64,000 bases of DNA from Macrostomum lignano. Its lineage: Eukaryota. The stretch covers positions 62,001-126,000 of the forward strand of contig NIVC01001548.1 of the NCBI GenBank assembly GCA_002269645.1. The letters run 5' to 3'. The notes below the pieces were generated by a model that did not search any database, was not told where the DNA came from, and worked only from the letters and a program-made list of their open reading frames with translations. Made by a program: the position numbers and the translations under genes. Below, piece after piece: positions 29,650-44,600 of this stretch (positions are counted from its first letter, which is position 1; every line of letters begins with the position of its first letter).

Positions 29650-32600
29650 CTACACAGCATGCACCAGCACCGTGGACGTCCTCCGGGCGTTGGCAATCTC
29701 AAGCGCCTTCTTGTGCCACTCTTTCTTTTTATTGAGCCACTCCTGGCGAGGCGGAGCAGGCAGAGGTGGGGAGAGGGGCAGCGGTGAGTTGGAGTGGATT
29801 GTCAGTAGGGATGCAGTGAGTAGACTAGTGCATCTGAGGCAGGGCAAACCACGAAATCTAGGTCTACAGTAATTTTGGATACTATCCTCTCCTTGCTGTG
29901 GTGTCTGTCTAAGATGAAAAATCAGACCGAGCCCTGAGAGCCAAACAGCATGCTTTGTGGCACTGCTACAGTGCGAGCGTATGCAGAAATCCTAGCACTA
30001 CAGCCTAGAGAGGCTTGTTACAGGTGCGAACATGCGGAATTCCAGTACCATAAGCTTACGAGTAGTAATGAATTTGAAAATTTCTTTAATTAGTAAATGC
30101 AATTTTAGAACTAGGAAAGAAATCGGTGGAGTAGAGATGAGTAGACAGTGGAGTAGAGATGAGTAGACAGCGGAGTAGAGATGAGTAGACAGTGGGGTAA
30201 ATACGAGTGGACAGCGGGGTAAAGACGAGTGGACAGCGGGGTAAAGACGAGTAGACAGCGGAGTAGAGATGGCTAGACAGCGGAGTAGAGATGAGTAGAC
30301 AGGGGGTAGAGATGAGTAGACAGCGGAATAGAGATGAGTAGACAGGGGGTAGAGACGAGTAGACAGGGGGTAGAGACAAGTAGACAGGGGGTAGAGACGA
30401 GTAGACAGGGGGTAGAGACAAGTAGACAGGGGGTAGAGATGAGTAGACAGGGGGTAGAGACAAGTAGACAGGGGGTAGAGACGAGTAGACAGGGGGTAGA
30501 GACAAGTAGACAGAGGGTAGAGACGAGGCTGTGAGGACTGCCTTGGCTTTGCGGCCCGGCAGCGCATTCTCGAACCGCCAGGTGGCAACGCACCTTGTAC
30601 TCCCGGTCCTTCTTCCTCATCTCCCGCCGCCGTCGACACGCCTGAAGAGGGTGAATGGGGTGGGGCGAGTGGGTGGTGAAGATGCTGCTTGCTGCAGGAA
30701 TTGAAGAGGAGTGGGCCAGATGGAGCCCCAGGGGTTTCAGCCTAAGGAAAATTATGTTTATTAATTATGGATTGGTGCAACATGCGGGAGGCTGGGGATG
30801 CCGCTTGCCTCAGGGCGACTTGATTTTTCGGAACAAAGGCAGGCACGCGGGATTTTCTGTCGCCAGAAACTCATTATGACGTTTTTAATTCGATAAAAGC
30901 GATTTGTACAACAGCAATCAAAGTAGAGTGGCTTCCCTGAGCCACTCAAGCCACTGACATGCAGCCTGCCGAGCTGTCAAAACTGAATTTGTGACCCCGG
31001 CTGTCGCTACTCCGTTGGAATTAACGTATAATAGTCTTTTTGAGACTGCGCACTAGGGTACACTGCCCAGGATTCGCACAATAGGTGTACACCCAGACTG
31101 CGCACTAGTGTACATTGCTCAGGATTCGCACAATAGGTGTACACCCAGACTGCGCACTAGTGCACATTGCTCAGGATTCGCACAATAGGTGTACACCCAG
31201 ACTGCGCACTAGTGTACATTGCTCAGGATTCGCACAATAGGTGTACACCCAGACTGCGCACTAGTGTACATTGCTCAGGATTCGCACAATAGGTGTACAC
31301 CCAGACTGCGCACTAGGGTACACTGCCCAGGATTCGCACAATAGGTGTACACCCAGACTGCGCACTAGTGTACATTGCTCAGGATTCGCACAATAGGTGC
31401 ACACCCAGACTGCGCACTAGGGTACACGCCCAGGATTCGCACAATAGGTGTACACCCAGACTGCGCACTAGTGTACATTGCTCAGGATTCGCACAATAGG
31501 TGTACACCCAGACTGCGCACTAGTGTACATTGCTCAGGATTCGCACAATAGGTGTACACCCAGACTGCGCACTAGTGCACATTGCTCAGGATTCGCACAA
31601 TAGGTGTACACCCAGACTGCGCACTAGTGTACATTGCTCAGGATTCGCACAATAGGTGTACACCCAGACTGCGCACTAGTGTACATTGCTCAGGATTCGC
31701 ACAATAGGTGTACACCCAGACTGCGCACTAGGGTACACTGCCCAGGATTCGCACAATAGGTGTACACCCAGACTGCGCACTAGTGTACATTGCTCAGGAT
31801 TCGCACAATAGGTGCACACCCAGACTGCGCACTAGGGTACACGCCCAGGATTCGCACAATAGGTGTACACCCAGACTGCGCACTAGTGTACATTGCTCAG
31901 GATTCGCACAATAGGTGTACACCCAGACTGCGCACGAGTGTACATTGCTCAGGATTCGCACAATAGGTGTACACCCAGACTGCGCACGAGTGCACATTGC
32001 TCAGGATTCGCACAATAGGTGTACACCCAGACTGCGCACTAGTGTACATTGCTCAGGATTCGCACAATAGGTGTACACCCAGACTGCGCACTAGTGTACA
32101 TTGCTCAGGATTCGCACAATAGGTGTACACCCAGACTGCGCACGAGTGTACATTGCTCAGGATTCGCACAATAGGTGTACAACCAGACTGCGCACGAGTG
32201 TACATTGCCCAGTACATCACACTCCCGCCAAAGCTCACGTCATAGTAGAGCCAGAAGATGAAGATGACGTGTGCCAGCACGTACAGCACGCTGAAGCTGA
32301 TGAAGACGTCCTTCTCGATCTTGTTCACCATCTCCATGCGGCGCAGGTGGCGGCTGCAAGGCTCCCCAGACTCGGCCTGCAGAAAGCACTCTCGCATCGA
32401 CTGCCAGCTGTCCGCGCCAAGCTCGCCGTCTCTGCCCGTGTGGGTCTGGTTGACTCGGCCAGCGCTGCCGCCCAGGTTCGGCGGTTGGATCATCGTCACG
32501 ACGGCGTGCCAGATGCTGACTATGCAGAGGATGGCCAGCGACATCAGCACGTACTTGTCCTGGAGGCGGGATTTGTGACAGGGCCGGACTCGTCACTGCG

Positions 32601-41600: not shown

Positions 41601-44600
41601 TGACTGAGTGACTGTCTGTTTGTCTGTCTGTCTGTTATGCCTGTCTGTTTGTCTGTCTGTGTCTGTCTGTCTGTTTTTCTGTCTGTCTGTCTGTCTGTCT
41701 GCCTGTCTGTCTGTCTTAGTGTCTGTGTCTGTCCGTTTGTGTCTGTGTATCCACATAATCGACATCCTCCCTTATCCGCTTGTCCCCATCCCCCGAGTCT
41801 CTCATCCCATAAGCTCTCTTAAAAAGAGCGCCGAATTCTCACCTCGGCGCCTCGGCCCTCGAGCAGTGGCTCCTTCCACTTGGCCTGGATGAAGGCATCG
41901 GCGTGGTACAGCTCCTTCAGGGTGTCAATCTCGCCGATCTTCAGGAACACCACTCGGATCTCCACCACCACCTGCGTGTTGGTGGGAGGAGGGCAAGGCT
42001 GCGGAGACTGTGGAGTGGCCTGGTCTCGGATCGGAATTCGTCACCGTCATTTACACTCATTCACAGCCAGTCACAGCCAGTCGCAACTAGTCACAGCCAG
42101 GCACAGCCAGTCACAGTCAGTCACAGCCAGTCACAGTCAGTCACAGGCAGTCGCAATCAGCCACTTCAACTTCCACTTTAACGCCAAAATCCTATGAACT
42201 CTCACTGAAAAGTCAAGAAGAGTCAACATCATTTGCGCTTTGAAAACCCGCTAAAATGTTAGTTTCTTGGAAAACCATCGGACCTCCCTTATCGGCCGGC
42301 CTCTCGGAAGTGATTTATGGCTAGGGAACAAAACGGCCAGCTCATTTCCGGGATGAAGCACCAGCTTGAAGGGGCGGGGCGGGCTGGGCTGAAAGCCGGG
42401 GAGGGGGCGGTCAAAAGAGGATTTAGGAGCCGCTGTTCCCTGCGAACCCATCGCCGACATCAAAAGACGAGTCTCGAGTGACCGCCCAACCCGCGGGAGT
42501 TCGGCTTCCTGTTTGCGCGGCCAGGGCAGATATTGGAAACTTGAAGCCTTCGGAGCTGCGCCATTTTTTGTGTCAATTCCGAGTGCTGCTCCCCACAAGT
42601 CCGGCGAAATCTGAGGGGAAAAAATCCCACTGCAGCCTCCTAATCCAGAGATTTTCAGGGCTCCGGGAGAAATCAAATTGGGCAAATAAAATTTCGTGGC
42701 CCGGCCGCGAGCCCCTCTGCTAAGCCGCCGCGTCCGATAATCTCGGCTGGGTCGCCTCGCCTGGCCGGGTGAGCAACAGACTTGAGCAGCTGCCAGCTGG
42801 CTGCAGATGTTGCTCAGCAGCTCCAATGCGATTTCAGTTCAATAATAAGCTAACTCAATCGGCAAGCCCAATATATGCTGTAAGAGAGAAAATATGATGT
42901 AACTTCCCACAGCTACTGACTAACATTTTTAGGAAAAGAGTGTGAACAGAAGAGAATAGGAGAGAGAAAAACGGGAGAGTGAGGAAGAGTGATAAAAACA
43001 GTGAGAAAGAGGAGAGTGTGGTAGGAGAAGGGAGTGAGAAAGTGAGCAGGAGAGGAGGTGAGCAGGAGAGGAGGTGAGCAGGAGAGGAGGTGAGCAGGAG
43101 AGGAGGTGAGCAGGAGAGGAGGTGAGCAGGAGAGGAGGTGAGCAGGAGAGGAGGTGAGCAGGAGAGGAGGTGAGCAGGAGAGGAGGTGAGCAGGAGAGGA
43201 GGTGAGCAGGAGAGGAGGTGAGCAGGAGAGGAGGTGAGCAGGAGAGGAGGTGAGCAGGAGAGGAGGTGAGCAGGAGAGGAGGTGAGCAGGAGAGGAGGTG
43301 AGCAGGAGAGGAGGTGAGCAGGAGAGGAGGTGAGCAGGAGAGGAGGTGAGCAGGAGAGGAGGTGAGCAGGAGAGGAGGTGAGCAGGAGAGGAGGTGAGCA
43401 GGAGAGGAGGTGAGCAGGAGAGGAGGTGAGCAGGAGAGGAGGTGAGCAGGAGAGGAGGTGAGCAGGAGAGGAGGTGAGCAGGAGAGGAGGTGAGCAGGAG
43501 AGGAGGTGAGCAGGAGAGGAGGTGAGCAGGAGAGGAGGTGAGCAGGAGAGGAGGTGAGCAGGAGAGGAGGTGAGCAGGAGAGGATGTGAGCAGGAGAGGA
43601 GGTGAGCAGGAGAGGAGGTGAGCAGGAGAGGAGGTGAGCAGGAGAGGAGGTGAGCAGGAGAGGAGGTGAGCAGGAGAGGAGGTGAGCAGGAGAGGAGGTG
43701 AGCAGGAGAGGAGGTGAGCAGGAGAGGAGGTGAGCAGGAGAGGAGGTGAGCAGGAGAGGAGGTGAGCAGGAGAGGAGGTGAGCAGGAGAGGAAGTGATTC
43801 AGATTATCCAGGTCCCGACCCCCTCCACACCTTCTCAGCCCGGATGCGGCAGCGCTCGTCGTTCTTGAGGCCGCCGCCCTTGTAGTTGACCTGGCCGGCT
43901 GAGGTGCCCCGGCGCCGGTTGCGCACGCGGCTCTGCTGCAGCGCCACGCTGGTGCTGTCGTTGATGGAGTCCCGCAGAGTCTCCAGCGCGTCGATGAGCC
44001 GCTGCGTGGGGTCCAGAGACACCGGCCCGGGGTCCACGGTGCCGATGGTGGCAGCACAGAGTCCGGACGGCCCGGCCCGCTCCGACAAGGATGTCGTCAC
44101 CACGGCGTCGCGGTCGGACAGTGCGGCCTCGGCGGTGGCCGCCGACGAGGAGGCAGCGCGGAGGAGGCCGCGGTTCCGCAGTCCGCGACAGGCCGCCTGC
44201 GCCGGCGCTGGCTGACGCCGGTAGTGCAGCTGCTGCGGCTGCTGCTGGAGCAGCTGGGGGTCCTCCGGCTCGTCACGGGCGTTGAGGAACTCGGTGGAGT
44301 TGAACTCGCCGCTGCCGTTGGACTGGCAGTCGTCGTCCGTGTCCACGGCGTGGTAGCCGGCGTCCTTTGGTGGCGGGGTGGGAGGTCAGTTAAGGTCAAG
44401 CTTTGATGAGGGTCGCTAGCGGTCACTAAAGGTCAGTTGTTGTCGCGATAAGCCCCAAAACTTGTATCGGTTTATTGTGAGCAAAAGCTCTCAGGTTAGA
44501 AGCAGGTCTGCGCATGCATGCTGAGCAAATTCTGGCTACTCAGCTTAGCCTGGGTATCCACGGAGACATCTAAGAGACCCTGCACTTCTCACTTTGCATG

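Follow-up and report, generated by a model that had tools for sequence, protein, structure and literature searches.

Sequence features of a Cys-less pentameric ligand-gated ion channel subunit from Macrostomum lignano suggest an inverted membrane topology with a cytosolic sensor domain

A 64,000-nucleotide stretch of the Macrostomum lignano genome (contig NIVC01001548.1 of assembly GCA_002269645.1, positions 62,001 to 126,000; hereafter the window), which is eukaryotic DNA with many tandem arrays, harbors on its minus strand a gene whose product, judged by its sequence, belongs as a subunit to the metazoan Cys-less (Pro-loop) branch of the pLGICs (pentameric ligand-gated ion channels). These channels are the textbook receptors reading an extracellular transmitter. 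Considered as a whole, this gene is probably best explained as encoding a Cys-less subunit of an inverted channel that would be gated from the cytosol. The orientation itself, with the N-terminus, the sensor domain and the C-terminal tail in the cytosol and the M3-M4 loop on the lumenal or extracellular side, appears reasonably probable to us, and would define a proposed class, not an established family. Five topology indicators, which are largely independent of each other, agree in this direction at the level of the sequence, and they suggest a property of the whole branch and not of this gene alone.

According to the mechanism that we propose, M1 would insert as a type II signal-anchor, for which the missing signal peptide, the strongly basic N-terminal flank of M1 and the 200 to 400 residues that precede it argue. 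During topogenesis, a long and folded N-terminal segment that is positively flanked remains cytosolic if it lacks a signal peptide. Upon such an insertion, the N-terminal extension, the beta-sandwich sensor and the helical basic tail following M4 would be cytosolic, and the M1-M2 and M3-M4 loops would be lumenal or extracellular. The missing Cys-loop disulfide and the absence of conserved N-glycosylation sequons from the sensor domain fit a reducing cytosolic location, and the enrichment of sequons in long M3-M4 loops fits lumenal exposure. The channel would be pentameric and probably cation-permeable, its pore opening when a cytosolic signal, be it a small molecule, an ion or a protein partner, acts on the sensor domain that faces inward. 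Phosphorylation of the conserved sites RR[TQ]ST and RRRGTS could have a modulating role, and the channel may operate in sensory or other neurons, in the manner of CNG or TRP channels.

Protein-guided alignment together with a splice-site search revealed a nine-exon gene, the eight introns of which all have AG/GT boundaries and are all in phase 0. The gene product comprises 614 amino acids and is 90% identical to M. lignano BOX15_Mlig010629g1. The exons, including a second copy of exon 6, are as follows.

57987-57883, minus strand: exon 1, the ATG and 35 amino acids (MNFSRSMLAYGKTPKRSGSGYGRPKRQLPTSTSYY), basic, hydrophilic and without signal peptide; outside 29650-44364
44364-43831, minus strand: exon 2, 534 nucleotides, exactly 178 amino acids (residues 36-213), with a hydrophilic disordered N-terminal extension, a conserved helix and the basophilic site RRRGTS
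41971-41843, minus strand: exon 3, beta1-beta2 with the invariant K224, T230, K232, E233 and W245
39671-39471, minus strand: exon 4, loop A (YWNP), beta5-beta6 and the Cys-less Pro-loop to Q323 (E311...FPLDVQ)
38590-38333, minus strand: exon 5, beta7-beta10, the sole conserved Cys (C392), the pre-M1 sequence RAARRPGYF and the start of M1
35164-35009, minus strand: exon 6a, the end of M1, the M1-M2 loop, M2 (E-2', R0', Q2', T6', L9') and the M2-M3 loop
34969-34814, minus strand: exon 6b, the alternative copy of exon 6 (Y-1', R2', T13', Y16'), of the same length and phase as 6a and with AG/GT boundaries
32559-32239, minus strand: exon 7, M3, the M3-M4 loop of 58 amino acids (32314-32487) and M4
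30641-30594, minus strand: exon 8, the basic motif following M4, 16 amino acids
29742-29650, minus strand: exon 9, the conserved C-terminal tail, 30 amino acids and the stop codon

Exon 1 was located by a tblastn search with the deposited M. lignano model P0001 (94.7% identity), and its GT donor and the junction with exon 2 reproduce the sequence TSYYDAGYH. It lies 13.5 kb upstream of exon 2, which contains no ATG, and provides the start codon. The initial annotation had named an unseen exon encoding a signal peptide or an additional transmembrane helix as a refutation of the inverted topology; exon 1 is an unseen exon, but it encodes neither and so does not refute it.

The family set comprised 90 full-length homologues, 92 extra representatives of 50%-identity clusters that a profile search had retrieved, and 67 Brachionus-type relatives, about 250 sequences in total; the profile search itself returned 695 clusters (50% identity) below E=1e-30. 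As controls served 110 to 120 orthologues of the glycine receptor (GlyR) alpha-1 subunit from one vertebrate orthogroup, retrieved with a query that is 99% identical to database entries. A mean Kyte-Doolittle hydropathy of about 1.6 or more over a 19-residue window was taken to indicate a membrane or signal segment, and a mean of at least 2.5 over an 8-residue window within the first 40 residues was employed as a second measure for signal peptides.

In line with the initial description of the 178-residue exon 2 as hydrophilic, no signal peptide was found in the 213 amino acids preceding beta1 of this gene product, where the 19-residue mean does not exceed 0.74. Likewise, the 19-residue threshold was reached ahead of beta1 in 3 of 78 homologues, all of them apparent artefacts or poly-Ala stretches, and the 8-residue threshold in 3 of the 90 homologues as compared to 85 of 110 GlyR controls. 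The 92 extra representatives contain no credible signal peptide, with P0344 as the one apparent exception. Inspection of the hydrophobic N-termini led us to reject them: P0006 and P0009 owe theirs to short ab initio first exons abutting beta1, P0010 to a translated 5'-untranslated region, and P0092 and its relative P0094 to poly-Ala. The apparent N-terminal signal-anchor of P0344, which together with a seemingly non-basic tail would have been a natural case of co-variation, corresponds to an upstream read-through by a prokaryotic gene caller; 67 Brachionus-type relatives of this sequence start with MDDLDKxQEASW, 15 amino acids before beta1. Because the anchor is a gene-calling artefact, the co-variation argument was dropped. 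We also discarded Alvinella Alpo6, reported to have 'lacked a native signal sequence' (PMC4801368), as a parallel, this protein being a glycine-gated GlyR-like subunit and not relevant here.

An annotation artefact would also account for these results, provided that the true 5'-exons encoding signal peptides are systematically absent from the gene models, in the window as well as elsewhere. Many models are indeed ab initio predictions, the N-termini of P0006, P0009, P0010 and P0344 are clearly wrong, and transcript contig L001 contains no ATG before beta1. However, a conserved hydrophilic helix at the N-terminus recurs in independent RefSeq models of several phyla, some 60 Brachionus-type sequences share the short acidic start, and two transcript contigs (L002 and L003) have in-frame stop codons upstream of the ATG, followed by hydrophilic N-termini. 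Moreover, when the 19.6 kb upstream of exon 2 were scanned for segments running from an ATG to a GT and containing a signal-like core, a single start emerged, located in a repeat, as compared to 9.6 expected from shuffled sequences, and hence no signal-peptide-like upstream exon beyond chance in the window. We regard a systematic loss of such exons as very improbable. The polyadenylated contig L001 of a family member (Logan SRR25726911, 267-537) carries an in-frame stop codon followed by about 170 codons up to beta1 without an ATG, and was rejected as a confirmation of the start for this reason; initiation at a non-AUG codon, intron retention or misassembly are possible.

The conserved N-terminal helix spans residues 154-186 (window 43912-44010), is amphipathic, and precedes beta1 by about 30 residues. 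In the AlphaFold2 (AF2) model, computed from a 76-sequence alignment, it is predicted with a per-residue confidence (pLDDT) of 78-94, as compared to values below 50 for residues 1-151. Its motif LDPTxRLIxAxxxLRxxIxxNT is also present in Owenia, Lineus, Tubulanus and transcript contig L002. The helix may be the counterpart of the canonical alpha1 helix, or may form part of a cytosolic collar together with the helix following M4.

Regarding glycosylation, no column of the sensor domain contains a sequon in at least 20% of the 90 homologues, and C392 is its only conserved cysteine (82 of 90); the domain has no conserved disulfide. Sequons in the N-terminal extension, which the initial annotation had raised as a caveat, are present, but each of them is common to only 2 to 4 of the 90 homologues. 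In ten flatworm lineages, 27 sequons fall within the long M3-M4 loops, versus 11.4 +/- 3.0 expected from composition-preserving shuffles, and none of 5000 shuffles reached 27; in the same lineages the sensor domains contain 5 versus 7.9 expected and the N-terminal extensions 17 versus 17.6. Ten other long loops, taken as an independent set, contain 18 sequons versus 10.8 (P=0.013), with 5 versus 9.4 in the sensor domain. The sequons of the cestode loops persist while residues in and around them change (NST/NAT, NES/NKS).

In the gene product itself, the M3-M4 loop contains the sequon NQT (N498; 32443-32451) and the Cys pair C519 and C529 (32386-32388 and 32356-32358) described initially. Their conservation, proposed as a check, was not borne out: both are confined to M. 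lignano, the Cys pair being found in 2 of the 90 homologues and a sequon at this column in 11, and only the enrichment of sequons in long loops as a class held. Two further members, P0263 and P0302, have related M3-M4 loops of 42 amino acids with a Cys pair that is placed identically in the two (xxCN...C[PD]Y), which would suit a disulfide in an extracellular loop and echoes the pair specific for M. lignano. Pfam searches with ten unusually long family members did not reveal any cytosolic or extracellular marker domain in their extensions.

The distribution of charges points in the same direction. When the Lys and Arg residues of the M1-M2 loop and the M3-M4 flanks are subtracted from those of the 15 residues preceding M1, the M2-M3 loop and the first 15 residues following M4, the difference is biased towards the sensor-domain side in the family (median +8, positive in 86 of 90), in contrast to the GlyR controls (median -4, negative in 110 of 110), and each of the 92 extra representatives has a positive value. 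The N-terminal flank of M1 has a net charge of +3, and the charge difference between the C- and N-terminal flanks, delta(C-N), has a median of -3 and is negative in 87 of 90 homologues, which predicts a cytosolic N-terminus; the controls yield 0.

As stated in the initial annotation, a basic stretch directly adjoins M4, and we found it to be conserved throughout the family. The tail following M4 has a median length of 48 amino acids as compared to 11 in the controls, and contains the nearly invariant motif [KR][KR]RR-x-M-xx-KD-[KR]-EY (R573 in 85, R574 in 78, M576 in 80, K579 in 72, D580 in 82 and Y583 in 65 of 90 homologues). In the AF2 model, M4 runs on as a single helix to residue 613, with a pLDDT of 85-94 in the tail. 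The sequence EWL.KKKEW...RR[TQ]ST.LLHxxHAx is common to Owenia, Capitella, Paralvinella, Ridgeia and Lineus; the element RR[TQ]ST, which by its sequence is a basophilic-kinase consensus site, is conserved in three phyla. The suggested resemblance of the C-terminus to a PDZ ligand is doubtful: the final H-A-V is conserved in close orthologues, and H-[AV]-hydrophobic is common to M. lignano and four annelids, but this pattern fits neither the class I nor the class II consensus and is not a canonical PDZ ligand.

A basic N-terminus is also compatible with an organellar channel, in which the Ser/Thr-rich N-terminus would represent a targeting peptide, e.g., for mitochondria, and the sensor and the basic tail would reside on the matrix or cytosolic side of an internal membrane. 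The positive-inside rule is valid for the matrix side too. The first 25 residues of exon 1 contain six Lys or Arg residues and neither Asp nor Glu, and the Owenia model and one Capitella model start similarly. The N-termini are, however, inconsistent within the family, since Lineus P0054, Liolophura P0070 and about 60 Brachionus-type relatives start with acidic residues (MDDLDK...), only 15 amino acids ahead of beta1. In addition, the sequon enrichment in the M3-M4 loops points to the secretory pathway. An organellar location appears improbable to us.

The membership of the gene product in the pLGIC superfamily is indicated by several lines of evidence. A phmmer search against PDB sequences retrieved ELIC and the GABA-A gamma2 subunit at E ~5e-13 (ELIC, E=4.7e-13), and the full protein matched PF02931 (Neur_chan_LBD) with 32.1 bits, above the cut-off of 26; for PF02932 (Neur_chan_memb) the score of 19.7 bits is below the cut-off of 28.1. 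The AF2 model comprises the strands of a beta-sandwich (residues 214-396) and helices at 400-421, 427-451, 457-485 and from 530 onward, with a core pLDDT of 85-96, and Foldseek matched it to GABA-A, GlyR and GLIC chains at E ~1e-19 with target-normalised TM-scores mostly between 0.62 and 0.77. Among the best 120 matches, the named proteins all originate from Platyhelminthes, Annelida, Nemertea, Rotifera, Mollusca or Brachiopoda; the identity amounts to 46-71% for trematode and cestode members and to 40-58% for annelid, nemertean, rotifer and mollusc members.

Within the family, F318, P319 and D321 of the FPxD motif as well as R396 and P398 are invariant, and L439 (M2 9') and P453 (M2-M3) are nearly so. 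When aligned on FPxD, the two canonical Cys positions are occupied by E311 and L325, both columns being invariantly devoid of Cys in the 76 sequences. The disulfide-bonded 13-residue Cys-loop of canonical receptors is thus absent, which confirms the initial description of a reduced loop without cysteines (residues 313-325). The pore is GLIC-like, with L9' and, in flatworms, a Glu at -2', which is E428 irrespective of whether exon 6a or 6b is used; the consensus outside flatworms is Q-N at -2'/-1'. The M2 register equals that of GLIC at L22'P23'. The Cys-less Pro-loop is not new, because the clade has been published, by Jaiteh et al. 2016 (PMC4795631) and by Johnson et al. 2023 for schistosomes (PMC9874803), where a Glu at M2 -2', or an acidic residue at -1' or -2', was described. 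In this respect the gene is an ordinary member of the clade.

The elements coupling the sensor to the pore are kept, namely the beta1-beta2 loop, the FPxD Pro-loop, the pre-M1 Arg and the M2-M3 sequence LPKISY. No other part of the protein is as strongly conserved as this gating interface, and therefore the sensor domain still looks like a gating module. A rival reading is an ordinary orphan neurotransmitter-gated channel with canonical topology, the extracellular beta-sandwich of which would be translocated without a cleavable signal peptide, either by M1 acting as a reverse signal-anchor or by an unrecognised internal signal. Several observations speak for this alternative or weigh against an inverted orientation. 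To our knowledge, the sensor domain lies outside in every solved and characterised pLGIC, including the Foldseek matches, and the conservation of both the pre-M1 arginines and the gating interface parallels that of canonical receptors. As canonical receptors also have basic residues before M1 and some after M4 (three Lys or Arg in the GlyR tail), the charge is not decisive by itself. In flatworms, the last part of the M3-M4 loop ahead of M4 is a basic helix (e.g., KRRLKLRIE) resembling the canonical cytoplasmic MA helix, which lowers the charge score of flatworm members. Rare proteins such as neuregulin-1 translocate a long N-terminal domain without a signal peptide. Furthermore, our measures for signal peptides and topology are simple heuristics, the controls represent a single vertebrate orthogroup and not canonical receptors of the same species, and the sequences used in the sequon test are phylogenetically related, three cestodes sharing 65-75% loop identity. 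Finally, planarian homologues are neuronal; they are expressed in mechanosensory neurons and yield phenotypes upon RNA interference (RNAi) (PMC9874803), including behavioural ones (PMC9874803, PMC8602322), and gabrg3L-2 has been placed together with pkd1L-2 in putative mechanosensory neurons (PMC8602322). The planarian RNAi phenotypes fit an ordinary neuronal receptor equally well (PMC9874803).

On the other hand, a canonical topology requires the translocation of 200 to 400 residues including basic clusters and a folded domain, and runs counter to the flanking charges of M1. Moreover, it places the conserved basic tail with its basophilic-kinase site outside the cell, and leaves both the sequon enrichment in the M3-M4 loops and the absence of conserved sequons and disulfides from the sensor domain unexplained. 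We consider it unlikely. The proposal of the initial annotation, that the subunit sits upside-down with a cytosolic sensor domain, survived all sequence tests that were run and would apply family-wide; it is a prediction, and its support is partial.

The comparison with known systems underlines these features. Like other metazoan Cys-less Pro-loop receptors, the protein lacks Cys residues on both sides of the FPxD loop as well as a second Cys-loop, shares the Glu at M2 -2' with the schistosome members, and belongs to a group in which the canonical M3-M4 domain is short or absent; nothing separates this gene from the clade. ELIC and GLIC are the closest solved structures by sequence, and likewise have a Cys-less Pro-loop, a short M3-M4 linker and the GLIC register of M2 (E-2', L9', L22'P23'). 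Both carry signal peptides, place their sensor domain in the periplasm and practically lack a tail after M4. In contrast, the protein studied here has an N-terminal extension of 213 amino acids of cytosolic type and a basic helical tail of 47 amino acids. With GlyR, GABA-A, nAChR and 5-HT3 receptors it shares the fold and the gating interface (target-normalised TM-scores of ~0.56-0.72 for the GlyR, GABA-A and 5-HT3 matches listed), but it lacks their Cys-loop disulfide, signal peptide and conserved N-glycosylation site in the sensor domain and shows the opposite charge bias, and most Cys-less family members are devoid of the large cytoplasmic M3-M4 domain. A purely functional likeness exists to CNG/HCN, TRP and IP3R/RyR channels, which have no signal peptide, a large N-terminal cytosolic sensor and cytosolic tails with kinase sites, and the presence of planarian Cys-less homologues in sensory neurons adds to it. 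As these channels have unrelated folds and form tetrameric assemblies, no homology is claimed.

The studies describing the Cys-less clade assume an extracellular domain (PMC4795631, PMC9874803), and Jaiteh et al. trimmed the termini and used the wording 'extracellular domain' (PMC4795631). In the searchable part of the literature, including papers that mention the clade, we found no statement on its topology or signal peptides, and a 2026 preprint still terms the function of the Cys-less group unknown (10.1101/2025.06.15.659772). New at the family level are the absence of signal peptides, the reversed charge bias, the conserved basic tail following M4 and the sequon-rich M3-M4 loops. We lean slightly towards the wider view that the whole spiralian, and possibly wider eukaryotic, Cys-less clade of ~700 clusters would be gated from the cytosol, that the lack of the Cys-loop disulfide would follow from this location, and that nothing sizeable would be extracellular apart from the short M3-M4 loop, which would carry glycans where it is long. 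If true, a cytosolic sensor in a widely distributed branch of animal receptors would represent a new operating mode for the pLGIC superfamily. It would explain the orphan status of the clade, the expected failure of ligand screens with bath application and the absence of the Cys-loop disulfide, and would redirect deorphanisation to inside-out patches and intracellular messengers. Vertebrates lack the clade; it is present in schistosomes, liver flukes and tapeworms, in which it has been proposed as an anthelmintic target (PMC9874803); its orientation decides which face a drug must reach.

The two copies of exon 6 form a tandem of 156 nucleotides each with 73% protein identity, and differ in M2 at the pore-lining positions -1' (A/Y), 2' (Q/R), 13' (A/T) and 16' (F/Y). 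Because they share phase and AG/GT boundaries at this degree of identity, exons 6a and 6b are probably mutually exclusive alternatives, and the Arg at M2 2' encoded by exon 6b could alter conductance or selectivity. The deposited model P0001 uses exon 6b, and the model of a paralogue, P0002, wrongly joins both copies. The Owenia orthologue resembles exon 6a and the Lineus orthologue exon 6b. At its 3'-end, P0001 terminates in a Pro/Ser-rich exon (28852-28613, minus strand) that does not align to the Owenia orthologue; exon 9 (29742-29650) encodes the C-terminus common to annelids and the nemertean. The C-terminus of P0001 is either a misannotation or an alternative isoform.

Nearly every intron of the gene contains at least one long tandem array (window 28000-58500), with periods of 14-52 and 7-70 copies. 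The array (TGTC)n, with ~177 copies, occurs three times, at 33881-34588, 41009-41716 and 44877-45579. Elsewhere in the window, open reading frames (ORFs) with endonuclease/exonuclease/phosphatase and reverse-transcriptase domains at 10564-12531 (plus strand) indicate a retroelement of the long interspersed nuclear element (LINE) type. An ORF at 2985-3980 (plus strand) matches Cupin_8/JmjC (E=1.4e-14), and another at 15184-15939 (minus strand) shows a weak match to C-type lectins (E=7.6e-5); each is probably an exon of a neighbouring gene.

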